Positions 31,639-58,903 of a DNA stretch of 64,000 nucleotides are shown one piece after another; the first letter of the stretch is position 1; each line of letters opens with the position of its first letter. A program made the translations under genes and the position numbers. Source of the stretch: Octopus sinensis (taxonomy: Eukaryota); assembly GCF_006345805.1 (NCBI RefSeq), contig NC_043002.1, positions 19,158,001 through 19,222,000 on the forward strand, written 5' to 3'. Below the pieces are notes generated by a model. That model had not been told where the DNA came from. It ran no database searches and was given only the letters and a program-made list of their open reading frames with translations.

Positions 31639-32089
31639 TTTGGAGCAGATTATTGTGGGATAATCGAAAGAAATAATCTAAGCAGTCAACAATGTAGGAT
31701 AAGTGAAAGAAATAATCTGAGTAGTCAACATATACGTATGTACGCGTATATGTACGAGCTCATAAAAGAGTATGTTCATGAGTTTTTATGTAGACGAAAA
31801 ATAATATTGAAGAGAATATATTAATTTATTTCGACACGTTGCTATTACATTTTTCCACGGGCACGAATTTGATAACAAAAAAAAAAAAAAAATGAAAAAA
31901 GCATCGGAGTAACGAATGAGTAACGATTCCAATAAATAAATGAAGTTGTGGATTTTTAGATATCTCTATATAAGTAGAAGCAGTGTTTTAGGTAATACAA
32001 TGAAACACGGTCTCCATGTTGCTACATGTTTTTAGTATTTATTTAATTGACAACATAAACACTTAAAAATACAGAACACCGAATTTTAT

Positions 32090-32157
32090 TTAACATTGTT
32101 CCAGTCCATCAGTGGGAAATTTCCGCCAGCTTCCGTACATATGTTTTAACTTACAAC
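32090..32157 (-). CDS. Gene B terminal coding exon: (G)CKLKHMYGSWRKFPTDGLEQC*
   Basis: Acceptor tttttctttccag; TAA at 32090-32092 overlaps AATAAA (32085-32090). Spliced CDS = 76+123+132+68 = 399 nt (132 aa, 12 Cys in the mature part). Confidence 0.85.
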
Positions 32158-32593
32158 CTGGAAAGAAAAACGTCCAATAAATATTAAGCGTATTCATCAG
32201 AGAAAGCAACATTAGTCAAGAATCTCCTGAACTTTATCAGGATAAAATATAAGCTCAAGAGCGAATGACATAGCTCTAGACAAGAAATTTTAGACAAATT
32301 TAGTGTACGAATCTCGGGTACAATGGGTTGGAAATTCGACAATTGTATATTGTTGATGCTGGCTTGTAATCGCTCGCTAAGGATGAATAGAAACACGAAA
32401 TCCAATTATCAAAGGAGAGGTTCATGAAAAGAAGTATAAAATCAAACATACTTGAAAATCATGAATATGAGCGAAAGAAATTGTTTGTACAAGATATATG
32501 TACACAGGAACGTGTATCAATTAATTCAGATTATGAATCAATATAATAGCAGAGACTGATTCGTTACATCTTACAATCTATGGATATACATAG

Positions 32594-32825
32594 GGCGGCG
32601 AGCTGGCAGAGACGTTAACACGCTGGGCGAAATGCTCAGAGGTGTTTTGTCTGCCGCTACGTTCTGAGTTCAAATTCCGCCGAGGCCAACTTTGCCTTTC
32701 ATCCTTTCGGGGTAGATTAAATAAGTACCAGTTACGCACTGGGGTCGATGTAATCGACTTAATCCGTTTGTCTGTCCTTGTTTGTCCCCTCTGTGTTTAG
32801 CCCCTTGTGGGTAGTAAAGAAATAG
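32594..32825 (+). mobile_element. Nin-like tRNA SINE in the last intron of gene B
   Basis: Full head and body. Confidence 0.85.
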
Positions 32826-32832
32826 ATATACA

Positions 32833-32879
<47 letters not shown>

Positions 32880-32950
32880 CGATGGCACTCGAAGAAATCC
32901 AGCGAATCAACACAAAGGACTTTTACCAAACTTTGGCAAAACAATTTCTT

Positions 32951-33118
32951 CAATCTTCAGGTAATTGAAATATCAGACTCTATATTCGTTTGTCTGTCCT
33001 TGTATATATATGCATGTATATCTATTTCTTTACTACCCACAAGGGGCAAAACACAGAAGGGACAAACAAGGACAGACAAACGAATATAGAGTCTGATATT
33101 TCAATTACCTGAAGATTG
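32951..33118. repeat. 53-bp perfect inverted duplication spanning a SINE/unique-DNA junction
   Basis: 32951-33003 is the reverse complement of 33066-33118. Confidence 0.9.
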
Positions 33119-33308
33119 ACTGTAACCATAACTCGAATTATTACGAATTGGACAGCCATGAAACGATCGTAGTGTTTTACTCATTATCTTTTATTAAACT
33201 TTTAATACTTTTGATATATATTTAAAATAATATAAATTAATTATTTTATGTATTGGCTTAAGTTTTTCATTGTTTGATTTGCCTAATTGTGGTTTTATCT
33301 CTAATTTA

Positions 33309-33374
<66 letters not shown>

Positions 33375-33375
33375 G

Positions 33376-33406
<31 letters not shown>

Positions 33407-33511
33407 TGTGTGTGGTGTGTATATATATATACACATATATATACTTGCATACATACATACATATATACATACATACATACATACATACATACATACATAC
33501 ATACATACATA

Positions 33512-34062
33512 GTGGTGGCTGCCCCCTCGTTATCGAGTATGACCATTGCACGAAGCTTAATCAATGTTGTTATCGTGCAATGCCTGTACAAGAAGATTTT
33601 TTTTAAGTGAGGAAAGGCTGTGCACTGAGTTAATCCCACTCACTAAGCAACAGCAGCCATAATCCGAAAAGAAGAACAAGTCAACATCATCGGTAACCAC
33701 TGAGCCGCAGGTTTTATGTCGGAGTTATCCCAGTTACCTGAGTTACCTTCTAGAGGGATGCCCTAACAAAGGCTTGGAGTCCTTCACTCCCAATGGTTTA
33801 ACCGCGCGATCAGGTATTCAGTCCAATTATTTCTATATCCCCGCGCATGATACAGCCTTAAGACATTTATTGGATGGCCGTTGACTCTCAAGAGTTCCCT
33901 CGCCCTTTGACGGGTTTTGTTTTTCATCCCGCAGGGTGTCCAATAAACACCCTCCTCACCAAGCAAGCTTGGTGGGGTTGCCGGTTTAGTCGCCGACGAC
34001 CCGACCATGCAACAGGTTGTACTGGGTTACATGTTACCAGTAGCACTCGAAAGTGACCTGAC
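33512..34062 (-). mobile_element. RTE-derived non-autonomous element (5' UTR-like part fused to RTE 3' end), flanked by (TATG)n
   Basis: 3' end ttaagcttcgtgcaatggtcatactcgataacgagggggcagcc matches the RTE end at ~3515-3560; no RT ORF; 5' part resembles 48130-48540. Confidence 0.65.
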
Positions 34063-34144
34063 ATAACATACATACATACATACATACATACATACATACA
34101 TACATACATACGTACATACATACGTACATACATACATACATACA

Positions 34145-34176
<32 letters not shown>

Positions 34177-34238
34177 CATATATATATATGTGTGTGTGTG
34201 TATTGTGCATATACTACTAAATAATAAGGTTTACTTAC

Positions 34239-34370
34239 CCAGACCCAAATGTACGAATAATCTAGGTATATTGTTCTGTATCGTGCAGGAAAATCTTACA
34301 CAAAAATTACCAAGAACACCAAATTGTACGGCATTAATGTGTAAGCAATTTCCTGCATTATCCCTGCAAT
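34239..34370 (-). CDS. Gene B exon 4: Cys module 2, (Y)CRDNAGNCLHINAVQFGVLGNFCVRFSCTIQNNIPRLFVHLGL
   Basis: Acceptor ccttttttcag; donor CTGG|gtaagt; 132 nt, phase 1-1; shares YCxDNxGNCL with gene A exon 4. Not in the ORF track. Confidence 0.9.
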
Positions 34371-34460
34371 CTGAAAAAAGGTAACAAAAATTTAATTATG
34401 ACTCGCATACGTACGAACTGAGTACATACATACAAGCATACATATATAAAGGTGTGTGTG

Positions 34461-34538
<78 letters not shown>

Positions 34539-34599
34539 TGTCTGTGATTGTACTTTTGTATTTAATACTTTACAAGAGCGGAGACAGTGACTCTCGGCC

Positions 34600-35210
34600 T
34601 GTTAACCTTCTTCAGACTGTAACATTGTCTTTAGTTTTTCTTTACTAGTTTCAGCTCGAGAGCTGCGGTCATGCTGGGACACCGCGGTTAGCTTTGCTAC
34701 ACTTTCAGTACTTGAAACCTCCTCCAGTATATGACATTTGCTGAATGAGGGAGTTTGATGTTGCAACCCCCATCTGCATCTCTTGCTGCGTAGTAAGTTC
34801 ATCTGGAACTTTTAACAGGAGGAGAGTCAGTTTTGCTTTGAAGACGCCTATATCCGCCCTATGTAAGTCTCTCAGTTTTTTGGGGGAGGATACTAAAGAG
34901 CTGTGGGCCTTGAAACTCAAGCCGTTGCAGTACCTGGTCCTGTATCCTGATAGAAGTATTAGGATTTTTGGAACTGTGCAGTGGCGTTCCGTTCTGCTGT
35001 TTGTGTAACTGTCAATGCCAAAGTTTGGTAAAAGTCCTTTGTGTTGATTCGCTGGATTTCTTCGAGTGCCATCGTTAATTTTACACTGTGTGGTGACCAG
35101 AGTTGGGAGCAGTATGAGGACAAATGTCCTCCAGAGGACCATCATGATTTCCTGTTCTCTCGTTCTGAAAGTTCTAAGGATCCATCCAACCAACCGTCTG
35201 CATTTGATGT
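34600..35210 (-). mobile_element. CR1-group LINE 3' fragment
   Basis: GWILRTFRTREQEIMMVLWRTFV...VFKAKL..LLLKVPDE...TSNSL. Confidence 0.75.
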
Positions 35211-35315
35211 ATATATAAACACACACACACACACACAACACACACACACACGCACACACACACACACGCACACACACACGCATACACACACACACACACA
35301 CACACACATACACAC

Positions 35316-36562
35316 ACAAAGGTGAGTCAAAAGTTTTGCAACATTTGCATACGAGCTAGTTTGCAGCGTGTATATCATGTGACCTAAGCAGTTCAAGCCG
35401 TGGAAGGTACCTACTGAGGTTGGTAGTATCATGGTAGTTGGTGCGCCAACACGTTTGTGTATTGCTTCATTCCGTGTGTGATTTGAAAGCTGCTCAGATA
35501 TGAACGTGCAACGTAGACTAACTCGGTAACTTTTGTTTGGAGAGATCGAACTTGACCATAACGCCGCGAAAGCAGCCATACGCATTTCTCGTGTGAAAGG
35601 TAAAGGCGCAGTTGCTCACTGCACAGTAACAAGATGGTTCAAGAAATTTCGCTTCGGTTGCAAGAACCTCGACAATAGACAAGGTCGAGTAGACCTAAAA
35701 CCGTGAATTCCGAAGTCTTGCTTCAAATCATAGAGGCAAATCCGGCGAGTAGCACTCAGAGAGTATCAGGTGAGGTCGGCATCTTACAGTCCAGAGTAGT
35801 CCGTCACCTTCACGAGCTCGGGGAAAAGTATCCGGAACTGCAGAATTGTGTCTCACAAACTGATCCCAGCTCAAGCACAAACGCCAGTGGTTGTTTGCAA
35901 GGAACTCCTGGAAAACCGCGTGATCTGCATTCCTCAAGAGTTTAATAATATGCGATGAAAAGTGTATGCTGTTCCGCAATCCTAACGTACATAAGCAGTT
36001 GTTAAAAAAGGGCTAGCTTCGGAACCTGTCACCAAGATTAGGAGTTTCGAACAGAAGGTGATGCTCTGCGCCTGGGGGAATTATGAGTGTATAATTCGCT
36101 ACGAATTCATTCCGGACGGTCGAATTATTGATGCCAGCCAAAAAATACCACCAGCTGGAACCGGTTTATGCCACTATCCGGCAAAAATATCCGGCATTTA
36201 TTACCAGAAAGTAAGTTCTTCTGCAGCAAGAAAGTGCAATACCTCATACGTCTCAGACGACCCGAAATAAATTCCACGAACTTAAGAAAATCGAACTGCT
36301 GCCACACTCGGATTATTACTTGTTCCGATGTATAGCTCATATCCTGTGCTCGTAATACTTCATCGATCAAGAGGAGATGGAAGCTTCAGCGAAGAAGCTC
36401 TTCGCCACGAAGGACAGAAACTAATATCAGCATGGGATCAAAAACTGTCAGAAAAGACCCTGCAACAGGATAACATCTATTTGAATGTTAGGGTCCTTTT
36501 GTTGTAATTTGACGAATAAAGCTAAGTTACAAAAATATTGCAAAACTTTTGACTCAATCTAG
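35316..36562 (+). mobile_element. Decayed mariner transposon
   Basis: TIR-like ends gagtcaaaagttttgcaa / ttgcaaaacttttgactc; CDEK, KVMLC.WG, PH.S..T..K..EL remnants. Confidence 0.75.
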
Positions 36563-36574
36563 AATATATGTATG

Positions 36575-36700
36575 TGGAGGCGCAATGGCCCAGTGGTTAG
36601 GGCAGCAGACACGCGGTCGGAGGATCGCGGTTTCGATTCCCAGATCGGGCGTTGTGTGTGTTTATTGAGCGAAAACACCTAAAGCTCCACGAGGCTCCGA
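36575..36700 (+). mobile_element. tRNA-derived SINE 5' fragment
   Basis: ggcgcaatggcccagtggttagggc...ggtttcgattccc (A and B boxes). Confidence 0.7.
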
Positions 36701-36810
36701 AATTAATTAAAATCGCAATAGACATTAAGTATTTAAGAAATTATATATAAAAACAAAACTAATAGTTTGAGAGATGAATTATGTGACATGAATATTTCAG
36801 TCTTACTTAC

Positions 36811-36933
36811 AAGTTTGAAGAACTTTGATTATGCCCCCAACACATTCTACTTTCAAACAGGTATAAAGTCTTCTATATACACCTGTTGTACCATTACAAA
36901 TACACATTCCTGCTACGTAACATCCATTACATT
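36811..36933 (-). CDS. Gene B exon 3: Cys module 1, (E)CNGCYVAGMCICNGTTGVYRRLYTCLKVECVGGIIKVLQT
   Basis: Acceptor ttttttcttacag; donor ACTT|gtaagt; 123 nt, phase 1-1; 6 Cys. Confidence 0.9.
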
Positions 36934-37493
36934 CTGTAAGAAAAAAATCAAAACGTTGTTTACGTGAGGAGTGAAGCAGTATTCTATGGCATAATTGAAA
37001 AGAAAGTTCCGGAGGTATAGAATAATTGACAGATATTTTGAGAAAAATCATATGGGCGGCTTATGAATATTGACTTAGGAGGAACATGTGTTAAATACGG
37101 ACATAAAAGAAAAATAGTCACTGATTTGTTGTAAGTTTGCAATATAACCCTTTTTTTTTTAGCACAACTGTATGTAAGAAATCTAGAATGCTTATTTACA
37201 TAAGAGAGATGTCTACTGTTTGAATCCAGAAAAGTACGTCAGGAAGCCATTCTACACATGCGTTAGTAATTATGCTTTTGTGCAAAGTTATGTTTTGGAA
37301 AGCGACTGTTAAATGTGGCTATTACAATGTGAATTATTTCTTTACTGAATAAGCGTTTAAGCTTTATTTCCTGTAAGATTCGGAGAAATATCTTGGAAGG
37401 TTTTAAATATTAGCTGGGCACATATCAGTGTCCTATAAAGTCAACTCAGTGGTATGAATAGAAAATCAGTAATTTATGAATACTGAAACATAC

Positions 37494-37569
37494 CTGTACG
37501 ACCAAATGAAACCACAACAACAATTATTGGAAGTAGAAGAAAAAACAAAGCTCTCAGAAGCATACACAT
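37494..37569 (-). CDS. Gene B exon 2: signal peptide MCMLLRALFFLLLPIIVVVVSFGRT
   Basis: Acceptor ctactttacag|ATG; donor ACAG|gtatgt; 76 nt, phase 1; strongly hydrophobic. Confidence 0.9.
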
Positions 37570-40500
37570 CTGTAAAGTAGAATAAACAAACGAAAAATGT
37601 ATTCGCTTTTTTTCATAGTATTGATAATAAATAACTTCTACAAAGGAGTACCTCTTGAGTAAGTCTAATAATTTATCTGTCAAAGTACACTTTTAAATAT
37701 TTGGAAAATATATGTGTATCTTCCTGTTCATACTAGCACGATCACTTCAGGTGATGTCAGAGTGCCTGTTATCTGATAAAACTTCAAACAACAGAACAAA
37801 AATGCGTTAAAAAGAAGCTTCAAGACACTACCATCAAGGTATTTGCCAATATAAGTATTTTAAATCAAGTGTACTGTCATGCTACAGAAAATTGTTTTAA
37901 TTGATAGCATGGGAAAATGGTATGCATCAATGTATGCATTTAAATGCGCGTTTGTAATCAGCGCATATACGGAGAAACCCGTCTATCTCATGCTCTGTCC
38001 AGATCACAGACGAACCATTTCTGACTCCCGAGTAATCTGATGGTATAATAATACCCATCATTCTCACTCTTGTCTTTAAATTCTTGTAAATGAACTGGTA
38101 CTCGTTTGCTGTTATTGTGAGTACTACTACTGGTAGTATTTTAACTAATTTCATAATTAATCTTTTGATTTTCCTGGTGAGAGTTTTTTTTTCTCTCTTG
38201 GAAACCTATTCCTTATCTTTTTTTTTTTCAGTTTTTTCAGAAATATCTGTTCAACATGTGTTAATGACTGCATATTCAAACTTCTAACACTTTGTTATTT
38301 GATTAAGAAAGTGCGTGTGCAAAAATCCAATGGACGAGTGATAGATCATGTTTAATTGCTTTGTGCAGATCAATGTTGTCAAAGAACATGCTGGGTTGAG
38401 TCTGGTTGGTTTAGTTTTGGTATTTTGGAAAATACAATTGTAGAGTACTGTGTTATGGTTAAAGTGAAGTTTGCTTAATTGAGATATTATGGTTGGTTTC
38501 AGAGTGACCGCGATACTAGATACAATACATTTTTACTGTTATTTTCGGTTAAATTACAAACTGAGATGTGAAAAAAAAAAACATCGATAAATTTAAACAG
38601 CAACTCTGCAGCTGCTTTGTCTGCAGTTGAGATGCAATTCATGATTTCAAAGCGTTTGTAAATTCATCTACACAGGAAAGGTTGAAAGTGTCCATCATAA
38701 TTATGTTTTCAGAATTGCATAAGTGACTGAAGGATTCGATTCAGATGCGGCACAGTTGGAAGCACAGGGGAGACATACGTGAGATCTGCCGACATCAACT
38801 ATAATTAAGTCATTTTCTTTATTGTAGACAGATTCACAGTAAGTGTGGGAAAACATGTCCTTTATGTCAACTGTAAAGGAATCAAGGAAAAAACCAGCAA
38901 CTCCTCTGATGAAACATTTTCAGAGTTATGATCGACTCCTAAACATCGGACTCGCTCCATTGTATTTTATATCTAATTAAATTTTAATTAATTAAAACTT
39001 TGTGTTGTTACTTTGGGGGTTTTAGATAAAACTAGTCATTTAGATTATGGCTATTCTTATCACTAAGAGTGTCATTTTAAACAATTCATTTTCTTTAGGC
39101 TTCCGACATCATCTATTGTAGCATCCGCGTTACTATTGCCATACAAGACGCTTGAGGGAAATTTGGTGAGAAACTTTGCACATTCAGTCTAAAGTTTGGA
39201 ATATGTATAGGTGAATGCTGCAAATCGAGTGCTATGAGGTTGTCCTTAATACTCAGGTTAGTCGACTTGTTAAGAAAACGGCGATGATGAACATCAAAAA
39301 GAAATTGATTTTAATTTTAGAAAACCGTGTTGATGATAAAATGTGAGACATCAGCAGCGGCGAAAATCTATTAGGAAGAGCATCTGTGTCCTAAATCTAG
39401 AGTTATGGAGTGTCTGTCGAAAATTGTGCTTCCAATGATAACCAGCATATGTAAGTCAATTTGAGGTTGGCTCGTAGAATGAAACTGATCCCAGTGTAGG
39501 TTCCTCTCAGATAAAAGTGATCACTTATTTTGTTCGTAATGATATGTGGTAAATAAACGTCAATATTGCTTTCTGTCCCTCGTATATTGGTTTCAAATTT
39601 TGGTACAAGGGTAGCAATTCGGAGGTGGGGATAAGTCGATTACATCGACCTCAGTACTTATTTTATCAACTGGCATTCATTTTATCGATTCCGAAAGGAT
39701 GAAAGGCAAAGTCGATCCCGTAAGAATCTGAACTCAGAACGTAAAGCATTTCACCCGACGTGCTAATGTTTCCGCTAGTTTGCCGCCTTGTCTCTCTCGT
39801 ATATTAATATAAACGGGAAGTTATTCGAAAATGTGCATGGATGACTGCCCTCTTTAGTTTGGTTATTAAATTCCTAATGGTACAAGCGAAGTTCGGCAAG
39901 GATATATGCAGCTTGGAGAACAAATACTGGGTGGATTAAGGTGTTCAACGTTGTTATAATTCTTTAAACCTCTCGTTTCTATTTTGTCGTTAAGAAATGT
40001 GTGTGACTGCTCTGTGCGTTTTATGAATAAGTCCTTTAATATCTCGTATGGTTAGTACATCGCTAATGAGGCGATAATGTTGCAAAATTCTCTGGTGACT
40101 ACAGAGGAGTGGTTTGCAGTATTATATATTCTAATTTCCTGTTAGCACTTAGTGATACTCCAAATTGCACATTATCTATCTGCTAGTGCGCACAAACGTA
40201 TAGTGTCTGCAGATTAAAAGAAAGGGACCTTAAGAGTAATTATTGCTATGATAGCATCAGTCGTGTTTATAGACTGGAATCTGACTGGGTAATGGTTAGA
40301 TCCACAGAGAAAGATTAAGGTATAAATCAGTAATAACTGGCACTAATGAAAAATATCTCGTTGCGTTTGCTAATAAATCGCATTTCAGGATATGCTGCCT
40401 TCTAACACAGACAATACAAATGTTGGTTGGTTGGAAACAATATTACAATAGTTCAATGGAAACATTAAAAAGCCCAATTAATCCTCTCGTGTTTTGACTA

Positions 40501-40879: not shown

Positions 40880-43170
40880 GTAGGAGATTTGAGTGATTCT
40901 CCTGCGAGTTATATCTACTACATTCCCTAAATTTGAATTTTTATTCGCCATCACCTGTGCAAAACAACTGAAGAAAAACCTGTATATTGTTTGGCTAGAT
41001 CTTGCCAATGCTTATGGATTTGTTCCGCACGCAATAATAAAAACAGCGATGGACTTCTTTGGATTCCAAAAGATGTTCAACGAAAGCTCATGTACTACGA
41101 CAACCTGAGGATGAGATTTACAGCAGGAAAGTTCACAACGGAGTGGCAACGGCTTGAAATAGGTATTGCAGCCGGATGCACGATATCAGTCATCTTATTC
41201 GTGCTAGTCATGGAAATGTTACTTAGATCTACAAACTGTGAGAAAGCTGTTACAAAGACACCATTAAGGGCTTTAATGGACGCCGTAACTATATTATCGG
41301 AAAGTAGAGAAGCAGCAGAGGGAACGTTAGAGCGGTTGGACGAACTGATAGGATGAAATTCAAAGACAAAAAGTATCGAAGCGTGGCTTTCGTGAAAGAA
41401 GGCAAGAAGAAGTGAAATTCAGGATAGGAGGTGAAGACATACCAACAGTGAAAGAACAACTAGTAAAGAGTCTCGGCAGATGGTATTGAGATTTATTAAA
41501 TGATAAGAAGCAAGGGAAAGAAACACACGAGTTAGTAGAACAAGGATTAAAGACAATTGACAGAACAACGCTGCCGGGAAAATTCAAATGTTGAATACAG
41601 CAATTTGGGCTGTACCCAAGAATAATGAGGCCATTGCAAATGTACGAAATAGCCTCGAGTAGAGTAGAAAGGATGGAACAAAGATGCAGTGTGTTTATCA
41701 GAAAATGGCTTGGTCTGCCGAAACCACTGAATATAACTGTACTATATGGAAAACCTGTGCTGCAACTACCAATAACATCAATCGCCTAAGAATATAAGGT
41801 TGGAAAGGCAAGGACAGTAATGATGCTAAGGTATTCAAAAGATCAGAGCATCTGGGAAAACCCAAAGGTACGAACAGGGAGGAAATGGAAGGCGGAAGAG
41901 GCAGTAAGCAGGGAGATCGGAAAAAAAAGGCACACAGATATAGTCGGAGCAATACAAGAAGCAAGAACCGGCTTAGGGTCGCAAAATTTCAGGCCATTTT
42001 GCAAGAGCAGTATAAAAGAGATGAAAGAGGCAGTGTTATACGAAGTGAGAAAGGAGGAAGAAGAAAGGTGAAATGTACATTTGGTGCAATGCAGTCAACA
42101 GAGACAGTGCCTGAGATGGGAGGAATATGTGATCAGCCGCAGAATATCATGGAAGGAACTTTGGGCTTGGGAACAAGCAAGAACATCCTTCCTGATCAAG
42201 TCTAGCTTCGACGTTCTACCCTCACCGGCGAACTTAGTCCGGTGGAACATAAAAACAACCGATGAGTGTAGATGCGGAGAGAAAGCGACGGTTAGACATG
42301 TTCAGTCAAATTGCAGACTAGCACTAGAAAGATAGACATAGCGGCATAATCAAGTCCTCGGCGTCATAAGCGCAGCACTCAAGGAGAAGATCGAGAGGTA
42401 TAATAGGGGAGAGTACCCAAAAGTAGAAAAGCGCAGAAAAGTATACTTCCACAAGGAGGGAAAAGAACATAAAACCAGGCCTACAAGTAAAGTATACGAT
42501 ATAGACGAAAGATGGAAGGGATACTGAGAGCTGGCCACGGACTTGGAACGACAAGTAATATTTCCATTAATAAAAACAACAAAAAGACCAGATTTAGTCC
42601 TATGAAACAGAGACCGGAGAATAGGAATTTTACTAGAATTGACAGTACCTTGGGAAGAGAACATCGGCAATGCAGAGGAACGAAAGAAGAGGTACGAAAA
42701 GCTAATCGAAGAATGCAGAGAAAAGGGATGGAATGTCGAATATTATCCCCTGGCAGTGGGGGCTAGAGGCTTCATTGAAAGGAAAATGACAACGCTTTTC
42801 AAAAGAAGATTTGTTTTTCTAGCTCCGAACTGCGAAAACTAATGAGAGCACAGGAGGCGGTCGAAAAAGCCAGCTTCTATATATGGCTGAAGCGGGAAGA
42901 CCAAAAATGGCTTGAAAGTCATAACATGCCGGCGGGAAATAACATCACTAGGTGAGACAAGCTGACACTGAATCAGTTTCGCTGACTGACAGGTGACGGT
43001 CGTTTAGAGAATACGCGGGCTAAAACTACGCGCCTTCACTAGTCAGTTAAGGTGAGACAGTGTCACATGACAACTTGCTGGGGTTGCCTGCTGGAGCCTA
43101 GCAGCAGGTATTTAAAGAGAAAAATTTGACAAGTCAGTCAGTCACCGGCTGACACTCGCTGACGATACAT
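40880..43170 (+). mobile_element. Hero-like (R2-group, restriction-like endonuclease) non-LTR retrotransposon, 5'-truncated and decayed, in gene B intron 1
   Basis: WLDLANAYG; EIGIAAGCTISVILFVLVME; LPGKFK; KVRTGRKWKAEEAV; CRCGEKATVRHVQSNC knuckle; RHNQVL; PDLV...ELTVPWEEN PD-(D/E)xK motif. Confidence 0.85.
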
Positions 43171-43807: not shown

Positions 43808-43842
43808 CTTATGAACTTGAAGATGGCCCTATGTTCAGAAAT
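43808..43842 (-). other. Gene B non-coding exon 1 (5' UTR; 5' boundary approximate)
   Basis: ...ttctgaacatagggccatcttcaagttcataag|GTAAGTG; paralog of 58868-58903. Confidence 0.6.
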
Positions 43843-44099
43843 AGAGAACGATATAAGTTAATTTTCAAATACCACTCAAATTCTGGCAGTTGCAAACACC
43901 AGCTGCTATTAAGCAGTTATAACTGAAATTCGCAATTGCTTCTTAATGATTCTGCTTCACCTGTCATTTCGATTTATCATGCGAGTCGTGGAGTGTCATA
44001 GGGAAATATTACAAAAGGCTAAAAACTACTTGTTTTCTTTATCTTTTTTTTTGTTAGTTTCATCTAACAAAATTGTTTTTGTTAGTTTTTTCATTTTGG

Positions 44100-46731: not shown

Positions 46732-46838
46732 CTAATAACGGACAAAGAGACTTCTCATCAGAGGCTTTTGCCAGTGAAGACGCTGATGCAGACCGTCAGT
46801 CAGCGTATCTATGCTTTTCGATACTTTTACGTCGCACG
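46732..46838 (-). CDS. Gene A terminal coding exon: (T)CDVKVSKSIDTLTDGLHQRLHWQKPLMRSLFVRY*
   Basis: Acceptor attttattcag; the phase-1 frame is the longest of the three; shares xC...TDGLxQ with the gene B terminal exon. Spliced CDS = 76+120+132+107 = 435 nt (144 aa). Confidence 0.75.
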
Positions 46839-47389
46839 CTGAATAAAATGGATTCAAAGATTGTAACAAACAGGTAGATTAGTTATATCATTAATTTCAA
46901 ACAACTATTTTATGCATTATTAACATTTATTTTATTGTTATCGGAAGGATTAAAGAATATCGATGATTAAATTTTTATTCAACAGCGTTTCAGGTCATCC
47001 CCCAGATATGTCTGTCCTCCCGCATAAATATGCTGCAGCGAACACTCTACAAAATATAACAAAACAATACAGTTTTAATTCAATTTATTCACCAGGCAAA
47101 GGCATACTGATCATATTTTCTCGTATACCTTTTCAATACATGAGGATTAAAATATTTGATTGTATTCATTGGTTATAGTACTATACAAGAACATTTGATA
47201 AGTTTTCTAACAAATGTGGTGATTGGTTTGGTGTGGTGGTTTGGAAGTCATACACCCGAAGAGATGTAGAGGGTGATAATTGTCTCATGTTACAGATAAG
47301 ATATAAGGTCGTATAGAGAAGCATATAATCTTGACTCTCTGCTAATCGTGTTATAGAATATGATTTTCTGATTTTGTTCATACAATATA

Positions 47390-48540: not shown

Positions 48541-48589
48541 AGTAAATCAGAAGAGAATTCCGAACCATATTCATCCGGAAGAATATGTG

Positions 48590-48750
48590 ATGTGCGTGTG
48601 TGTGGTCTGTGTGTGTGCGTGTGTGTGTGTGTGTGTGTAGTGTGTGTGTGTGTGGTCTGTGTGTGTGCGTGTAGTGTGTGTGTGTGCGTGTGTGTGGTCT
48701 ATGTGTGGTGTGTGTGTGTGTGTGTGTAGTGTGTGTGTGTGTGTGGTCTG

Positions 48751-48781
<31 letters not shown>

Positions 48782-48840
48782 TGTGTGTGTGTGTGTGTGG
48801 TCTATGTGTGTGTGTGTAGTGTGTGTGTGCGTGTGTGTGG

Positions 48841-48871
<31 letters not shown>

Positions 48872-48971
48872 AGTGTGTGTGTGTGCGTGTGTGTGGTCTA
48901 TGTGTGTGGTGTGTGTGTGTGTATGTGTGTGTGTGTAGTGTGTGTGTGCGTGAGTGTGGTCTGTGTGTGTG

Positions 48972-49020
<49 letters not shown>
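48590..49020. repeat. Compound (TG)n array with recurring tagtg/tggtct interruptions
   Basis: Directly visible. Confidence 0.9.
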
Positions 49021-49028
<8 letters not shown>

Positions 49029-49057: not shown

Positions 49058-49189
49058 TCGCATTATAAATAACCTTCAAATGAAAATCGTTTACCACTTT
49101 CGTGCATTCAAATGTTACACAACGTTCGTTAAACACACCAGGATGTTTCTCCCCTGCGTCCAGACAATTTCCCTTATTATCTTTGCAAT
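49058..49189 (-). CDS. Gene A exon 4: Cys module 2, (Y)CKDNKGNCLDAGEKHPGVFNERCVTFECTKVVNDFHLKVIYNA
   Basis: Acceptor tgtgttttcag; donor GCGA|gtaggt; 132 nt, phase 1-1; same length as gene B exon 4 and 18/44 residues identical to it by manual alignment. Confidence 0.9.
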
Positions 49190-49379: not shown

Positions 49380-49688
49380 ATGATGTATGTGTCGGTTGTG
49401 TGTGTTTATGTGTGTGTGTGTATGTGTGTATATACTTGTGTGTGTGTGTATGGGGGGGTGTTGTGTGCGTTTGTATGTGTGTGTGTGTATGTGTATATAC
49501 TTGTGTGCGTGTGTGTGTGTGGGTGTGTGTATACTTGTGTGTGTGTGTGGGGGGGTTGTGTGCGTTTGTATGCGTGTGTGTATGTGTATATACTTGTGTG
49601 TGTGTGTGTGTGTGTGGGTATGTGTATACCTGTGTGTGTGTGGGGGGGAGGTTGTGTGCGTTGTATGCGTGTGTGTATGTGTATATAC

Positions 49689-49725
<37 letters not shown>

Positions 49726-49735
49726 TGTGTATGCT
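49380..49735. repeat. TG-rich minisatellite, ~55-60-bp higher-order unit (tatacttgtgtg...ggggg.ttgtgtgcgttt)
   Basis: Directly visible; about five units. Confidence 0.85.
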
Positions 49736-50061: not shown

Positions 50062-50101
<40 letters not shown>

Positions 50102-50134: not shown

Positions 50135-50212
50135 GCGGTACATATGTTTCGGGCCTTTATTAGACAGATTTATAACAATGCATAATGTATGTCTGTGGCC
50201 TTCTTCAGCCGC
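50135..50212 (-). ncRNA. Type I hammerhead ribozyme-like motif at the 3' end of a decayed Penelope-like remnant (~50100-50880)
   Basis: GCGG-CTGAAGA-A-GGCC...GGCC-C-GAAA-CATATG-TA-CCGC: perfect 4-bp stem I, palindromic stem III (ACATATGT), GUA site. Confidence 0.65.
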
Positions 50213-51391
50213 GCACAACAGCTTCCACAAGGACATGTGTTACATCAAAAATTCTTGGTTGGGGATGCAAATCCTCTCATTCGCGTACGACATAATGCGG
50301 CAACAGCATAGAATTGAAGCGTCCATCTCTTTCTTCTCTCAATGTAGAATGAGGAAATTTGGATGTTGAAGTAATGTAAATAAATTAATAAATAAATACA
50401 TATATAGACGTGAAGGAACCTGGTAATAAGAGTAAATAGGGGTAAAGATGGAGGGGCGAGAATTCAGGACGAAGGATAAAAAATATATAAAAAATATATA
50501 AAAAGTGTAAGTATAGAAAAATATAAAAATGTAGAGTATAAAGATATAAAGAGATATAAGGAGATATAAAGGGGATATAAAGAATATAAAAAAATATAAA
50601 TGAATATAAAGGCATAAGGTTATAAAGTAAAAATAGAAATAGAAATAAAAGTAAAGAAATAAAAATAGGAATAAAAAAGGAATAAAAATGATAAAAATGT
50701 AAAAAAATGTAAAAAAATATAAAGATAAGGGATGTATAGAGGTTACGGACCAAACATGGTGGTCAGGAAATTGACAAAATTTAGTTGTAGAAGCTTTGGG
50801 TGTCAATAAATCAACAGGGTCGTCTGGGGACCTAGTGTATTGTAAATCAGAGCTGTTGAGCGGTTAATCTAGTTCTTTGAGTTAAGTGGTCATCTTGTAC
50901 ATACATACCAGCATGGATACATACACCCATATACACGCGCACATATACGCGCGCATACACGGCTCCAAGCATATAAGCATACATATGCACTCACGTGTAA
51001 ACATGTACATGAACACATATAAACCCACACACATGCGCATATATACATACATACAACAGAATATGCGCATATATACACGGACATTATACGTGTAGACACC
51101 CATATATACATACGCACGTCCATCCTTACATACACATACACAGATGCCCACACGTCCAGGTTTAGATATAAGATATTAAAGGATGTATATAAGAACGCAT
51201 GTAAAGAATCACGCACTCACGTCTACACGTGTACGCACACATGGCTGTGTGTCCATATGTTTCGGTTCCGTTATAGCATGTATATGTTATATTATAGGAA
51301 AAATCAAAACCAAGGCAGAACGAGTATCTCAAGTCATTTACAATAGTTTAATTAAGCTAAGGTGAATTTGAAGTCTTACAGCTGAATATAC

Positions 51392-51603
51392 AAGGAGGTG
51401 CTGAAAAGTTCCTGGTTTTAAGGGTATCGCGAAAGGCCTGATTGGAAGCCCAACTTTCCGACTTCTTTTACAGGGCTTAGAAAAACTGAAGAGCCACTGT
51501 AATAAGTGTGTGAAACTGAGAGGAGAAAATGTTGGATATAAAATCGTAATTTACTGATACTCCCGTGTTTTCTTTTACCCAAACCATGAACTTTTCTATA
51601 CCT
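51392..51603. mobile_element. Mariner-derived MITE (related copy at 60791-60975)
   Basis: TIR-like gaggtgctgaaaagttcctgg / ccatgaacttttctatacct; shared core ttcttttacaggg.ttaga...tgtgtgaaactgagaggagaaa. Confidence 0.7.
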
Positions 51604-52740
51604 TCTCGTGTGTTTGCATATTTATTTTTTAATTCCTTTCTTCGATAAATATTTAGCCAAGTTTCTATTTGCGGGTATTCCTCGCTTTTTCCATTCAACA
51701 TTTATTTCTTCTGTTTCTTCATTGAACATGCTGATAGTGTAAAATCTACATATGTCTATAAATACACCATCATCACTACATGATTCTTTGCAAAATATTT
51801 TCGATGGGGAAATTGCATACATTAATATTTTCTCTAAATGGTTCTCCTTCAAAGTAACATCATCCTCTTGAACATACATTTCACTTTATAAATGCCAAAA
51901 ATGATAGTATGAAATAATTTCAACAACTGACATAACACACACCGCAATGTAGAAGCCAGATATATAAAATTCACACTATATTGGATTTAAGAAATTATGT
52001 ATAAAAGTGAAATCAATAATGAACAAAATGATTGAGTGCTTACATATTTTATCTTACGACCAAAAAAGTATCAAATAAATTACACTTCGTAAGAACATTA
52101 TAGCTCTTTCCGGAACTTGATAGATCATAATATCGATCTACAAGAAATGTGCACGAGTTGGAGAAACCAAATAATTAATGTAGGAAATTACATAGAGACA
52201 TCATCCTCATAACATGTTCTGTGATTATCACTCATAAGTATGACCTGGTAATGTGTATCATGCTTTATAGGTGACTGTTTTGCGCATCTGTATAGACACA
52301 AGCAGAGACACCGTCTTTGCCCTCCAGCCTTTGGAGTAGCAAAATAGCGAGGATGTGTAAGTTGGAGGGAGAGAAGGCGGTACCAGTACTTATTTGTTAT
52401 TCAAGATCTTATGGCTGTATGCCTAACACTCTAATCATTTGGTCAGATATATGGAACATAATAATTGAATAAGTGCTAAGATAGCGAGCTAGCAGAATCG
52501 TTAGCACGCCGGGCAAAATACCGAACGGCATTTTTGCCTGTCTTATGTTCTGGGCTCAAATTCCGCCGAAGTCGATTTTTACCTATCATCCCTTCCAGAT
52601 CGATAAAATATGTAGAAATTTAGCACAGAAATCGATGTTATCGAAAAGCTCACACACACACAACAAAATTTGAAGCCCTTTGTCTATAGGAAAAAAAGAA
52701 AGAAAAATTTTCAGAATGAAATATTTTAGATTTGACTTAC

Positions 52741-52860
52741 ATGTTTTTATAACTTTTGCCACTTCGTTTTTACAGTCTATTTCTGTACATGTATGGGCGG
52801 ATTTACTTTTACCTTTGCCATCACAAAAGCATTTTCCATCAAAAACACATCCTTTACAGG
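52741..52860 (-). CDS. Gene A exon 3: Cys module 1, (A)CKGCVFDGKCFCDGKGKSKSAHTCTEIDCKNEVAKVIKT
   Basis: Acceptor tttctttttcag; donor ACAT|gtaagt; 120 nt, phase 1-1; 6 Cys aligning with gene B exon 3. Not shown in the ORF track. Confidence 0.9.
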
Positions 52861-53035
52861 CTGAAAAAGAAATATATTTAGTAAAGAAAAAAAGAAACGT
52901 TATTTCTTTATTCGAGATGATGGATTAATGGCAATGTCTACTTTATGTTTTACCCTGCTTTAAATTTCGATTAATTTAATTAATTCAAATTAGAAGTTAG
53001 TATTCTAAATATTAATAAATAGTAAAGAGAAAATT

Positions 53036-53196
53036 CTGGAGTGACTGTGTGGTAAGTAGCTTGCTTACGAACCACATGATTCCGGGTTCATTCCCACTGC
53101 GTGGCACCTTGGGCACGTGTCTTCTACTATAGCCTCGGACCGACCAAAACCATATGAGTGGATTTGGTAGACGGAAACTGAAAGAAGCCCGCTGTA

Positions 53197-53269
<73 letters not shown>

Positions 53270-53462
53270 ATGTCTGTGTTTGTCCCCCAAGATCGCTTGA
53301 CAACCGATGCTGGTGTGTTTACGTCGCCATAACTTAGCGGTTCAGCAAAAGAGACCGATATAATAAGTACTAGGCTTCCAAAGAATAAGTCCTGGGGTCG
53401 ATTTTCTCGACTAAAGCGGTACTCCAGCATGGCCGCAGTCAAATGACTGAAACAAGTAACAG
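53036..53462 (+). mobile_element. tRNA-derived SINE with internal (TA)n/(TG)n, third family, full copy
   Basis: Head ggagtgactgtgtggtaag...ccgggttca; tail ctccagcatggccgcagtcaaatgactgaaacaagtaa; fragments also at 23505-23700, 59800-60090 and 63780-63930. Confidence 0.85.
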
Positions 53463-53625
53463 AGAGTAAAAAAAAAAGAGAGACAAAAAACGTAAAAGAC
53501 ATAAAAAAATATGTGGGATTTCTGAAATTTTAAACTAGAGGGAAAAGGTGAAGAAATAATCTGGTGTAAATTAAGTTAGAGTGACATTGTTTTAGGAAGA
53601 TAATCTTCAAAAGTAGAAATAAAGA

Positions 53626-53956
53626 ACCCCTATGGTCATGAATGACCATGGGATTCGACCAAGATAATTACCCTCCGAGGTACAAGCCCGGGCAAGGTTG
53701 TTTACGGAAGACCATCAGTCGCCCATGCATACCGGTCTCTCCTCTCCTCGCCACCGATGTTATCCAAGGATTAGGCAAAAGCCGATACAGCTTGGCACCA
53801 GTGACGTAGCAACTCATTTCTACAGCTGAGTGAACTGGAGCAACATGAAATAAAGTTAATTGCTCAAGAACGCAACACACAGCCCGGTCGGGAATCGAAC
53901 TCACAACCTCATGACTGTGAGCACGATGCTCTAACCACTGAGCCATGCGCCTTCAC
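53626..53956 (-). mobile_element. tRNA-derived SINE, second family
   Basis: Matches 13124-13457. Confidence 0.85.
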
Positions 53957-54118
53957 TAGTATTCAAAAGTATTTACAAACAAAACTTGATATGACACTGC
54001 TCTGTAATAGGCCAATGTTAATGTGTGTGAGGGTGTAAGTGTGTGTAAAAGTACCACAAGAGATACAAAGAGACCAAAAGAAAAAGATGCAAAATTAAAT
54101 CAACATCCTGAAATATAC

Positions 54119-54194
54119 CTGCATTTATTCCTGGAACTTCAGTTACAATTGGAAGGACTAGAAGAGGAAGCAAAACTTTCAGACTAATATACAT
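54119..54194 (-). CDS. Gene A exon 2: signal peptide MYISLKVLLPLLVLPIVTEVPGINA
   Basis: Acceptor ttttacttacag|ATG; donor GCAG|gtatat; 76 nt ending in phase 1; hydrophobic core. Same length and same cag|ATG layout as gene B exon 2. Confidence 0.85.
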
Positions 54195-54329
54195 CTGTAA
54201 GTAAAACAGAATTAGCATGCGTAAAATATGTTGACAGTTTCAAAATTTTAATGATTAATAATTAGATTTTGTTTTTAGTTTGCAAGATTCTTGATGTGTA
54301 AACGTGAGTTGGAGCAAATTTTGTCGTGG

Positions 54330-54740
54330 GTCATTTTACCAGCTATAAACACACGCACGTGTTTAATTTCACTTTATTTTGCATCAATTAGTTAGTTATT
54401 TAACAACTAACTCATCGAGTGTTCCATTAATCATTTTGTTAATCAGTTATTCAGTTGTGTTTACCAAAGTCCTTTTGTCGCCATTTGAGGCCTCTTCAAA
54501 TAAATGCCTTCTCCACATTTTGTTAGCTTCAGTTCCGATCTGTTCATGTCATTCGCGGTTTCTTCATGTCACTAAAGAGGTCGCGAATGACGTCAAGACT
54601 TGGGTAAACACAACTGACTGACTGATTAATTGAATGATTAATCAAACGATCGATTAGTTAGTTGGTTAAATAGCTAACCAATTAACGAAAAATTAAGAAG
54701 TGAAACCAAACCAGTGCGTGTGCTTATTATTGGCACTATG
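54330..54740. mobile_element. Old foldback/MITE-like element with long imperfect inverted arms
   Basis: acacacgcac...aatttcactt versus aagtgaaacc...gtgcgtgtg; ttagttagttatttaacaactaac versus ttagttagttggttaaatagctaa. Confidence 0.5.
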
Positions 54741-55915
54741 TTGCCCCCGAGATACAAGAAATGATTCATAATTTCTGCGAGAATTTTAACTATTAAGTAA
54801 ATAATATATCATTTTACCAGTCAAACTTAACTGTATTAAGTTTTCTATACTTAGATATATACCGCCAAGATCAGTTAACTTGAATTGATTCAGTTTACTT
54901 AAACATCATTCTTCTCAAATCAAGAGTTAAATGTATTTTCAGAAATGTCCATACAGACTTCAGTAACGAAGATGTAAGATGTGCATGAATATTTTTAAAG
55001 ATTTTCGATTGCATTTCTCCTTATCTGATTCTGTTTGTCAAGATTATATTTTGGAACGTGTACTGGAAGATTCGGAATATATTATAGTATATGCGAAAGT
55101 AATATTAAATTCAACGGATGCAAAGATCGGAAAATGCTTTCACTCTCCGGCCGAAAAACTATACTTTAGTACGTGTTTAATGTTTTTAAGAAAAGAAAGA
55201 AAAAATCTGTTGTGTCAAAACTACTGAAAAGGTTGCAAGACACAACGAAAATTTTAGAAAATAAAAATAAGAAATAAGTGGAAATTTTACCGGTGAATGT
55301 GTTAAATAATAAGGCACTAAAAGAGAATGACTCTCCCCAGACACAACAGAATATGCTTCAACACACGAACTCATATAAAGAATCTTGCAAACCAAATCCA
55401 AAATCGAAAGAAAAATTCATTAAACTTTCATCCCTTAAAATACTAAGATTTCGTTCCAAGTCAAAATGAAAATAATATAATTAGAGAACGTTGTTTTGTA
55501 ACACCTGAACAAGGCGAGAAAGTACAAAATAGACTACAAAAGGAAAAGAAAACGAAACAAAGTTGCAGTTTTACTTTGTATTTCTTTATTTCGAGGTGAA
55601 GACCTCGTCTTCAGGATATTTAGAAAAAGTAGTAGTTGGTAAAAGCTGTTGCTCAGATGTGTGTGGGAGAAGGGGATAAGGGAGAAAGGAGGGTGACATG
55701 TGCAGACTGGTATTGCTAAAGCAACCATACTGCTTCGTGTAGTTCCTTCCTTTTGTTAATGTTACTAATATAATTAGTATTGTAACAGTTATATAGGAGT
55801 ATATTAACTTTAAACCTACCCCGCATAATAGGGAATATTGCATACGTTAACATAGATTTTTATTTAGACCGTGATTCTGTAAATCATAGAAATTGTCAAG
55901 AGCTTTGTTCTTAAC

Positions 55916-56515
55916 TCATTTCTCTATTGCCCACAAGGAGCTAAACATAGAGGAGACAAACAAGGACAGACAAAGGGATTAAGTCGATTACATCGACCCC
56001 AGTGCGTAACTGGTACTTTATTTATCGACCCCGAAAGGATGAGAGGCGAAGTCCTCGGCGGAATTGGAACTCAGAACATAAAGATAGACGAAATACTGCT
56101 AAGCATTTCGCCCGGCGTGCTAACGTTTCTTATTTCTTTATTGCCCACAATGGGATAAACATAGAGGGGACACATAAGGACAGACAAAGGGATTAAGTCG
56201 ATTACATCGAACCCCCAGTGGAAAAACTGGTACTTAATTTATCGACCCCGGAAGGATGAACGGCAAAGTCGACCTCGGCGGAATTTGAACTCAGAACATA
56301 AAGACAGACGAAATACCTATTTCTTTACTACCCACAAGGGACTAAACAGAGAGGGGATAAACAAGGACAGACAAACGGATTAAGTCGATTATATCGACCC
56401 CAGTGCGTAACTGGTACTTATTTAATCGACCCCGAAGGGATGAAAGGCAAAGTCGATCTCGGCGGAATTTGAACTCAGAACGTAGCGGCAGACGAAATAC
56501 GGCTACGCATTTCGC
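55916..56515 (-). mobile_element. Nin-like SINE multimer (three body units, two heads)
   Basis: Repeated units as in 6829-7438. Confidence 0.85.
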
Positions 56516-56670
56516 ATTTCATATATATGTATATACGTACTAAAATTATTCTTTTATAGTTACACATGTACATGCACGCACAAACTCTCGCCCTGTCTGT
56601 TATAGTTGTAGTTCCATTATAACATCCCACATATATTCTTATTTTTTACTTTTATTCTCTTATATATTAT

Positions 56671-56727
<57 letters not shown>

Positions 56728-56838
56728 CACACGAGGGACAGACAGGCAGGGCGTGAGTTTGTGCATGCATGTACATGTGTAACTATAAAAGAATAATTTT
56801 AGTACGTATATACATATATGCATGCATGCATACATACA

Positions 56839-56870
<32 letters not shown>

Positions 56871-56949
56871 CATACATACATACATACATACATACATACA
56901 TACACACTGAGTGAGTACTGCGTCAATGCCTCTCCCGAAATATATAACA

Positions 56950-58690
56950 TCACCAGTGAAACCATCCTGGCGGTTACTATGAAACTGTTAAACGGAAAAA
57001 TCACCTGGGAGACACCTGATGGTAGGCTATTGGTACAAAATACTCGCGCTCTACAAAAACATTTTCACGACCCTGCCCCAAAATGGATGCTGAGCTAAGT
57101 ATACCAGATTTGTTGACGTATGACGGACAAATAAACCTTTGTAACCAAAACCTACAGGCCCATAACATGCTTGAATGTTATGTACAAACTGTACACAGGT
57201 TGTTTGAATGTTTCTCTAAGAACATTTCCAAAGAAATAGTGTGAAAATGGACGAACAAGCGGGGGAAAAGAAAGGGAGCTGGAGCTGTACGGAACAGTTC
57301 TTCATCTGAGAAAGCCAAGAAACATCGCCGTCACCTCTTAACAATATAGGAAAATTACAAGAAGGCGTTCAGCTTTGTTCCTTTGCGTAGAATTACTATA
57401 CTTTTCCAAAATACCAGCTGCTGTGGCGAGTGTCATTGAAACAAACCATAACATAGTCCACACAGTTATCACTGACAACTACTAAAGCAACACCTATTGT
57501 TACAAATAGAATTAAGCTATCAGCAGGCATATTCTAGGGTGACACTTTATCTGTAGTGTTGTTTGTACTGGCAATGAACTCCTTGTCTGTCCTATTAACA
57601 AAATGCCAAGGATACATGCAGGGATATGCAGAAAAGCATAAAAGTAATGTCACCTACACATTTTTTGTTGATAACCTAGTTATATTCTAGTAACATGAAC
57701 AACGTCGAGAGACAATTAGAACGTGTCACAGTTTGCGCAAAGCAAACACTCATACATGATAGTCAACTGAAAAAAGATTGTCGACCAGAAAAAACATTTA
57801 CATTGATAGTTCGTCTATCTCCACCCGAAATCGATGAGAATGTTGCATACGTGGGCACTGTGAGTAAAGCTAAAATAACAAAATAGTACTTCTGTAGACT
57901 CCGGGAAATATGAAACTCAGAACTGTTTGCATTTAACAAGGCCATATCTCACAATGTTATTGCAGTGCCAGAGATAGTACCAATATCTGAAATATTGGCA
58001 TGGGAACTTGATAAGATCCTCAGTCTGGATATAAAAACTAGAAAGATACTGACCACCAACGGTAACTTTCACATTAACAGTGACACGGATAGGATCTATG
58101 TGAGAGTGGAGATGGCAGTAGAGGCATAAGGTCGGTCCAAATAGCCTCTGAATGCTGCAGTGTATCACTCAGACAACATCTGCTGAATAGTATCGAAAGA
58201 AATTAGTGCATTACATGCGTACTCAAATGAGAGCAACATCTTTAGGGAAGAGGAAAAACTACTGAGCAGGTATTCTGAGCGTACAACTGTCCCATCCGTT
58301 CCAATGCAGGCTTGGCTGGCCTACCTTAACAGAAGCTTGGAAGAGAAGCACACATCATACCTCCAAAGGGTACATATCCCATAAACTAGAAAATAATAGC
58401 AGCATTTACAGGAAGAATAGCCTCTTCTGGGCTTGTGGTTAATTCATTACCTCCCACCTAGAATAATACCTTCGCTATCCAGAAACATGTGATTGCTACA
58501 AAATACGGGTAAGCAACAGAAACAATGATACCACCAAACCGCCACGTTGTAATAGAAAATTTCAGCAGCTGCCCCAAAATGTACCCAAGATATTACCTGC
58601 CCCTGAAGCATGATGTAAAGACTATTTACAATACTACCCACATGAAGGTTGTCTTGAAAAGATTGCCATGAAAGGATTACCCTGACGTAT
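56950..58690 (+). mobile_element. Decayed R4/Dong-like non-LTR retrotransposon in gene A intron 1 (ends approximate)
   Basis: AGIF*GDTLSVVLFVLAMNSLSVLL...NVTYTFFVDNL at ~57520-57690; HVIATKY and LKHD remnants near the 3' end. Confidence 0.7.
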
Positions 58691-58867
58691 ACATGAATAG
58701 TGTATCAGAACCAGAGTGTATTCTCACCATTATAAAAAAGGAATACTACCATAATTATCTGATAGATAGCGATTAATAATTAAATGTATTTGGCATTGTA
58801 ATTATATACATTTAGCATCAAAATTCTATTTCACTGTTAAATAGAACACTACACATATTTCACTTAC

Positions 58868-58903
58868 CTTCTGATCTTGAAGATGACTTCTACGTTCAGA
58901 AAT
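58868..58903 (-). other. Gene A non-coding exon 1 (5' UTR; 5' boundary approximate)
   Basis: Minus strand reads ...ttctgaacgtagaagtcatcttcaagatcagaag|GTAAGTG, a consensus donor. A close homolog with the same donor sits at 43808-43842. Confidence 0.6.

Follow-up and report, generated by a model that had tools for sequence, protein, structure and literature searches.

Two genes, here called A and B, lie on the minus strand of a 64,000-nucleotide (nt) stretch of the Octopus sinensis genome (the window; CM016864.1:19,158,001-19,222,000, assembly GCA_006345805.1). The window was placed at these coordinates because its positions 1-7602 match the flank of LOC118763828 in the CM016864.1 record of that assembly at 100% identity. 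It is AT-rich (~37% G+C) and dense in microsatellites, degraded retroelement open reading frames (ORFs) and a 185-bp repeat that resembles a short interspersed nuclear element (SINE). A and B each encode a small, putatively secreted protein with 12 cysteines and are members of a family found so far only in Octopus. The family includes LOC118763828 itself (gene C, protein P0003), an annotated O. sinensis gene on the same strand as A and B.

An earlier note on this DNA had proposed both genes as paralogues with matching architecture. At all eight of its splice junctions, a GT donor on the minus strand pairs with an AG acceptor that follows a polypyrimidine tract; the donors are of the GTAAGT, GTATGT or GTAGGT type and the acceptors read (Y)nCAG. 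Joining its exons reproduces its two proteins exactly, with 144 amino acids (aa) for A (coding exons of 76/120/132/107 nt) and 132 aa for B (76/123/132/68 nt). The genes follow a five-exon plan: a short 5′ untranslated region (UTR) exon, an exon that begins with the ATG, two phase 1-1 exons (~123 and 132 nt), and a terminal exon of 68 nt that ends in Cys-stop. With the last exon of A corrected as described below, its coding exons measure 76/120/132/68 nt. Those of P0003 (85/123/132/68 nt) and of a further relative, P0004 (73/123/132/68 nt), come from independent gene models in other octopus records, and their exon phases are identical to those of A and B. The proposed UTR exon and 76-nt signal exon opening at cag/ATG also held up. 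The UTR exon end, CATCTTCAAGnTnAnAAG directly before GTAAGT, is kept in A, B and C, and the intron-1 end, ttacag directly before the ATG, is kept in these three genes and in P0004. Exon 1 of A, which is followed by GTAAGT, shares 84–92% identity with the corresponding exons of B and C. Coordinates are given in Table 1.

Table 1. Features of genes A and B, with the neighboring family genes C and D. Positions are those of the window unless prefixed L001; HMM, hidden Markov model of the family; CDS, coding sequence.
Feature	Position	Strand	Remarks
Gene A distal promoter block	59450..59567	-	aligns to gene C promoter, 64% over 120 nt, E=2.8e-8
(TATA/ATAC)n microsatellite	58967..59327	.	found by TRF; between the two promoter homology blocks of gene A
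Gene A exon 1, 5′ UTR	58868..58904	-	donor after 58868; 5′ end approximate
Gene A exon 2, ATG and putative signal peptide, 76 nt	54119..54194	-	acceptor ttacag/ATG
Gene A exon 3, 120 nt, phase 1-1, cysteines 1-6	52741..52860	-	junctions verified; HMM E=1.6e-10
Gene A exon 4, 132 nt, phase 1-1, cysteines 7-10	49058..49189	-	junctions verified; HMM E=1.1e-13
Gene A corrected terminal coding exon, 68 nt	46979..47046	-	(K)CSLQHIYAGGQTYLGDDLKRC + TGA
Gene A conserved 3′ UTR	46874..46978	-	AATAAA at 46979-46974 and 46936-46931
Terminal exon of A in the earlier note	46732..46838	-	no HMM match, no paralogous DNA counterpart, lacks 12th cysteine
Gene B promoter block, conserved with gene C	43844..44066	-	B/C upstream alignment
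Gene B exon 1, 5′ UTR	43808..43843	-	5′ end approximate
Gene B exon 2, ATG and putative signal peptide, 76 nt	37494..37569	-	junctions verified
Gene B exon 3, 123 nt, cysteines 1-6 and N-glycosylation sequon NGT	36811..36933	-	HMM E=8e-13
Gene B exon 4, 132 nt, cysteines 7-10	34239..34370	-	HMM E=1.1e-12
Gene B terminal exon, 68 nt CDS and 3′ UTR	32042..32157	-	HMM E=0.013
Gene C (LOC118763828)	L001 7700-19748	same as A/B	left of window position 1
Gene D terminal exon (…CLLDHVYSQWQRSITQTMAEC)	L001 28339-28253	opposite, convergent	beyond gene C

One exon of the original model was replaced. A tblastn search with database paralogues exposed a second candidate for the terminal exon of A, upstream of the exon that the earlier note had reached through junction 49058/46838. 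The acceptor of this exon, 47046-46979, is ttgttatattttgtag before AG (ttttgtag/AG) at 47046. The exon is phase-compatible and ends ...LKRC-TGA, with the TGA overlapping AATAAA. Its 68-nt length, Cys-stop ending and stop/poly(A) layout recur in B, C, P0004 and D. Together with its flanks it aligns to the gene C terminal exon and 3′ UTR over 330 nt (67% identity, E=3e-21), and the family HMM matches it and not 46838-46732. When peptides were compared with the C-termini of the family, the proximal exon scored 61 (reached by 0 of 500 shuffles; shuffle mean 20) and the exon of the earlier note 26 (reached by 9.4% of shuffles). The TDGLxQ motif that A and B had appeared to share is thus a chance resemblance. 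Corrected A has 131 aa, ends …KCSLQHIYAGGQTYLGDDLKRC, contains 12 cysteines and fits the family alignment throughout, whereas the earlier version had 11 cysteines. The correction restores the 12th cysteine, the 68-nt length and the shared stop and 3′ UTR block. The last exon of A is 47046-46979, and 46838-46732 would be at most a minor alternative 3′ exon. The block TGTTRAATAAAA...CAATAAAATAAATGT in the 3′ UTR is common to A, B, C, P0004 and D, and positions 46900-46874 of A match the 3′ UTR of D. Long (TG)n/(CA)n tracts flank exon 4 of A on either side, at window positions 48586-49021 and 49397-49730. The first begins 36 nt past the exon 4 donor, and the second has a 95-bp higher-order period.

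Gene B required no change. Its coding sequence ends ...TDGLEQC-TAA at 32090, followed by AATAAA at 32090-32085 and ATTAAA at 32047-32042. Its exons are 84% (exon 3), 77% (exon 4) and 71% (terminal exon) identical to those of the O. bimaculoides orthologue P0001. Over the protein, B is 77% identical to O. bimaculoides A0A0L8HM59 and is its orthologue.

A and B align by BLASTP with 36% identity (E=1e-19) and all cysteines in register; with similarity far above chance, they are evidently homologous. Between paralogues, the coding exons, the intron-1 end, the 5′ UTR exon and the stop/3′ UTR block can be aligned, and the introns retain no similarity apart from shared SINE-like repeats. The promoter is alignable between B and C over ~250 nt; with exon 1 included, identity is 71% over 290 nt (E=5e-34). 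A word-indexed search of a protein collection with the A protein alone returned no match, because the paralogues share no 5-mers and the A+B alignment is needed. A profile of A and B matches P0001-P0004, uncharacterized proteins of O. bimaculoides and O. sinensis, with E=3e-39 to 7e-30. A, B, C and P0004 form one clade.

A profile of three family proteins was searched against 1.84 billion (1.84e9) representative proteins and gave 17 matches. Three of these (P0008, P0014 and P0016) are long and repetitive and were rejected as relatives because their matches are repeat-driven. The remaining matches with a reported source come only from O. bimaculoides, O. sinensis and O. vulgaris, in agreement with the lineage restriction that the earlier note had proposed. 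Most of these are 120–155 aa long, and a few models are truncated or chimeric. All of them are uncharacterized or unnamed except for one automatic 'UPAR/Ly6 domain-containing' label. At least 11 loci of the family are already predicted in O. bimaculoides and two in O. sinensis. The O. bimaculoides loci all lie on CM046606.1, and six have near-consecutive XP accessions; the accession numbers suggest a second tandem array in this species.

P0002 (XP_014771142.1, O. bimaculoides LOC106869796) is an older chimeric model in which exons 3-4 of the B orthologue are followed by the exon for the first cysteine module (exon 3 equivalent) of the C orthologue and an unrelated tail. In the divergent family member LOC118763783 (P0028) of O. 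sinensis, the annotated start lies at L003 10001; coding sequence similar to the exon for the first cysteine module (L003 9800-10171, HMM E=1e-7) reaches further upstream. The P0028 model begins MCALKLC… and looks N-terminally truncated. A family-type terminal exon in O. bimaculoides (L004 232-357, HMM E=0.03) lies ~10 kb upstream of LOC128248060, the gene of P0018, and hints at one further family member there.

Within the window, family-type exons are detected at the A and B positions only, both by tblastn and by scanning all six frames with the family HMM. The HMM matches with E<1 are exons 3-5 of A and exons 3-5 of B, and no others. The window therefore holds exactly two copies, and these searches found no further paralogues or pseudo-exons in it. 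More family genes were found immediately left of the window, as the earlier note had anticipated in suggesting a possible larger cluster. The 5′ UTR exon of gene C lies ~130 bp left of window position 1, and its coding exons lie 2.4–12.1 kb further left. The terminal exon of gene D follows beyond gene C. The gene order is A (58.9–46.9 kb), B (43.8–32.0 kb), a 32-kb repeat-rich spacer, C and D. With LOC118763828 starting so close to the window and D beyond it, the locus is a tandem cluster of at least four genes.

The ~185-bp repeat (…GTTCAAATTCCGCCGAGGTCGACTTTGCCTTTCATCC…) has 21 matches in the window, often arranged head to tail in twos or threes, and is found in the O. bimaculoides loci as well. 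It is present at 873-1242, 5971-6158, 6875-7437 and 16815-17005, and again at 32641-32829, 55918-56500, 59597-59738 and 62621-63111. It appears to be a SINE or satellite that is abundant in octopus; ARAGORN found no tRNA match to it and Rfam no RNA family. Rfam and tRNA scans of the whole window were likewise empty. A ~320-bp tandem duplication with 75% identity (46191-45883 and 45842-45522) lies within the 3-kb spacer between A and B. Four degraded retroelement ORFs lie on the plus strand. One (40991-41356) has a weak RVT_1 match (E=5e-4) and is the only one of the four with a Pfam match; the other three (2587-3267, 13923-14851 and 28173-28757) are reverse-transcriptase-like by eye. The remaining window ORFs of at least 120 aa represent translated microsatellites or pieces of degraded retroelements.

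Both A and B are missing from a protein collection of 5.8e9 clusters, although their neighbor C is in it. In the sources covered, the two genes thus lack protein annotation, a gap that the earlier note had thought possible for automated annotation. Its description of the genes as unrecognised holds in part. At E<=10, Pfam returned nothing above noise for A, B or 10 relatives, neither A alone nor the family profile matched a PDB sequence, and no description of the family, its loci or its motifs was found in the literature searched. A strong match to a well-characterized family was looked for in Pfam and among PDB sequences, and none appeared. On the other side, at least 11 O. bimaculoides and two O. 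sinensis loci of the family are already predicted as uncharacterized proteins. LOC118763828, O. bimaculoides LOC106869796 and LOC106869804, and ~9 more uncharacterized loci belong to the same family as A and B. They share with them a putative signal peptide, 12 aligned cysteines, five exons with 123/132/68-nt phase-1 exons, and conserved 5′ UTR exon, promoter and 3′ UTR blocks. Unlike these annotated members, A and B are missing from the public protein sets searched, and A additionally has a one-residue deletion, no sequon and a disrupted promoter.

The encoded proteins fit the disulfide-rich secreted type proposed by the earlier note. All 12 cysteine columns are aligned across the family, including B and corrected A. 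A hydrophobic core stands near the N-terminus of all 13 full-length members. In 12 of them exactly 12 cysteines follow; the divergent P0018 has 10. In each full-length member the core is followed by a short polar stretch and then Cys1, with small residues before Cys1. The core is LLPLLVLPIV in A and LLLPIIVVVV in B (10-residue Kyte-Doolittle means of 2.87 and 3.56). All family members lack another hydrophobic segment, and none has a hydrophobic tail at the C-terminus. Predicted mature chains are ~106–107 aa long, with masses of 11.7–12.7 kDa and isoelectric points of 7.1–8.8. A sequon (NGT, NGS, NHT or NQT) directly follows Cys4 in B, C, P0004 and several others. The motifs CKDxxGNC and GVxxNxCVTxxC are fixed, and the loops diverge fast. 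Across the mature region of A, B and relatives, the ratio of nonsynonymous to synonymous substitution rates (dN/dS) is 0.27–0.65. This is fast but below 1, and with all 12 cysteines invariant it points to constrained genes. From these features we infer secretion, disulfide bonding and a binding function.

P0003, the neighboring paralogue, was modeled with AlphaFold2 from a 13-sequence family alignment. The mean predicted local distance difference test (pLDDT) score is 79.7, and means over 10-residue blocks are ~90 or more for residues 31-110; with only three sequences the model was poor (pLDDT 55). The predicted core is all-beta, with a beta-hairpin, two three-stranded sheets and a short C-terminal helix. 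Foldseek against viral structures gave no match. The nearest structural neighbors of the model in the PDB are pairs of fibronectin type I (FnI) modules (e.g., 3gxe, 3ejh, 3cal), a weak match; like the predicted structure of the family, these are small beta-hairpin or beta-sheet modules in tandem with disulfide staples. The family could accordingly be a very divergent offshoot of FnI or von Willebrand factor type C (VWC)-like modules, not a new fold, and we regard this as possible but doubtful. The top matches are the pairs 8-9FnI and 2-3FnI (E 0.02–0.65; target-normalized template modeling (TM) score 0.47–0.57 over ~90 columns), and the von Willebrand factor C4 domain ranks 37th (E=1.6). However, no Foldseek match reaches E<=0.001, the query-normalized TM score is 0.34–0.40, and sequence identity to the FnI pairs is ~10%. 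None of 12 members has an FN1 (PF00039) or VWC (PF00093) match in Pfam at E<=10, and the profile search against PDB sequences was empty. An FnI module combines a beta-hairpin with a three-stranded sheet and has 4 cysteines per 45 aa, and the family has 12 per ~105 aa with a spacing of its own. Single-VWC proteins are short secreted one-domain proteins, and the family resembles them (e.g., arthropod Vago) and VWC modules in general as small, cysteine-rich, probably secreted, all-beta extracellular binding modules. Unlike VWC, it has CxxC-x5-CxC and no CC pair, and the motifs CxxCxC and CCxxC are absent. The modules encoded by exons 3 and 4 are not detectably related, with no significant internal duplication (hhalign E=0.2), and this also argues against a link to FnI or VWC.

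The reading preferred here is that A and B are intact, tandem, same-strand paralogues of an Octopus-restricted family, clustered with C and at least one more member (D). We place its probability at roughly 0.85. Several observations weigh against it. Signal-peptide cleavage was judged by hydropathy alone. A has no annotated orthologue, and its nearest relative is 40% identical. A and B are absent from the protein collection, and no near-identical O. vulgaris orthologue is in it either, which could reflect low or very restricted expression. Four UniProt accessions of the family are also missing from the supplements of two octopus proteome studies, of O. vulgaris skin mucus and of the posterior salivary gland, a weak negative.

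Other points against concern gene A in particular, which is the weakest member of the family by dN/dS, deletion, sequon and promoter. It has the highest dN/dS of the clade (0.43–0.65). Its exon 3 carries a 3-nt (one-residue) deletion relative to the paralogues, and the N-glycosylation sequon is lost. Its promoter is interrupted by a ~360-bp microsatellite: the distal block is kept at 59567-59450, the proximal part is replaced, and only 36–46 nt of proximal homology are left. A, unlike B, might on these grounds be a decaying or silenced copy that is structurally intact and no longer properly expressed. We consider this unlikely. The A reading frame is intact, the splice sites of all four coding exons are canonical, all 12 cysteines, the CKDNKGNC and CVTFxC motifs and the stop and poly(A) block are kept, and dN/dS remains below 1.

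Exon 46838-46732 could also be a real alternative 3′ exon of A; the resulting isoform would have 144 aa and lack the 12th cysteine. In favor of such an exon, its AG acceptor is good and its frame open, and O. bimaculoides LOC128248178, LOC128248169 and LOC128248166 have annotated isoforms (X1-X4) that differ in the C-terminal exon alone. The exon lies, however, further downstream than the conserved stop and the 3′ UTR block AATAAA...AATAAAATAAATG, has no homology to any paralogue by DNA or HMM, encodes a peptide with chance-level similarity and would leave A with an odd number of cysteines; such an isoform is improbable. The automatic UniRef name 'UPAR/Ly6 domain-containing protein' of A0A0L8H3R2 (P0007) raises a last alternative, that these are Ly6/uPAR three-finger proteins, which are also small disulfide-rich beta proteins; many Ly6 domains begin with CxxC, as do the mature family proteins. 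This identity was rejected on sequence, motif and fold tests and is very improbable, since UPAR_LY6 (PF00021) matches none of A, B and 10 relatives including P0007 at E<=10, no three-finger or snake-toxin-like structure is among the top 50 Foldseek PDB matches of the P0003 model (pLDDT ~80), and the 12 cysteines have another spacing, with no C-terminal CC...CN motif and no glycosylphosphatidylinositol (GPI) tail.

If A and B are functional paralogues as preferred, their pre-proteins would enter the endoplasmic reticulum co-translationally and lose the signal peptide at about residue 23-26. The mature A or B chain would be ~106 aa (~11.7–11.9 kDa), mildly basic and folded as an elongated all-beta chain of small beta-sheet modules held together by six disulfides. 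Most paralogues, A excepted, would carry one N-glycan after Cys4. With no transmembrane segment and no GPI-type hydrophobic C-terminal tail, the product would probably be released as a soluble extracellular protein whose fixed cysteine scaffold presents fast-diverging loops. At least B and C keep common promoter blocks, which suggests shared regulation. Together these features suggest extracellular binding proteins that are diversifying as a set under common cis-regulation.

A and B are new unannotated members of an existing, uncharacterized Octopus-restricted family and not a new kind of system. The finding is unsurprising in kind because cephalopod genomes are known for many taxon-restricted genes. 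The O. sinensis annotation gains two missing genes with corrected exon models, and two other model errors are exposed, the chimera in O. bimaculoides and the apparent N-terminal truncation in O. sinensis. What is delineated is a coherent, tandemly expanded, Octopus-restricted family of putatively secreted 12-cysteine proteins that has no Pfam entry, solved relative or literature. The defined family, a confident structural model and the conserved B/C promoter blocks provide a usable base for expression and functional work. Secreted families restricted to one lineage often underlie traits particular to a clade, for instance venom, pheromones, immunity and reproduction. Tentatively, the family may be an innovation at the level of the octopus genus or family. 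Its disulfide-rich beta fold would then be new and without a detectable ancestor, and tandem duplication would have produced at least two chromosomal arrays of fast-diversifying secreted ligands or binders, with A and B as functional members. The repertoire would then serve octopus-specific biology, for example chemical communication, reproduction, host-microbe recognition or prey handling.

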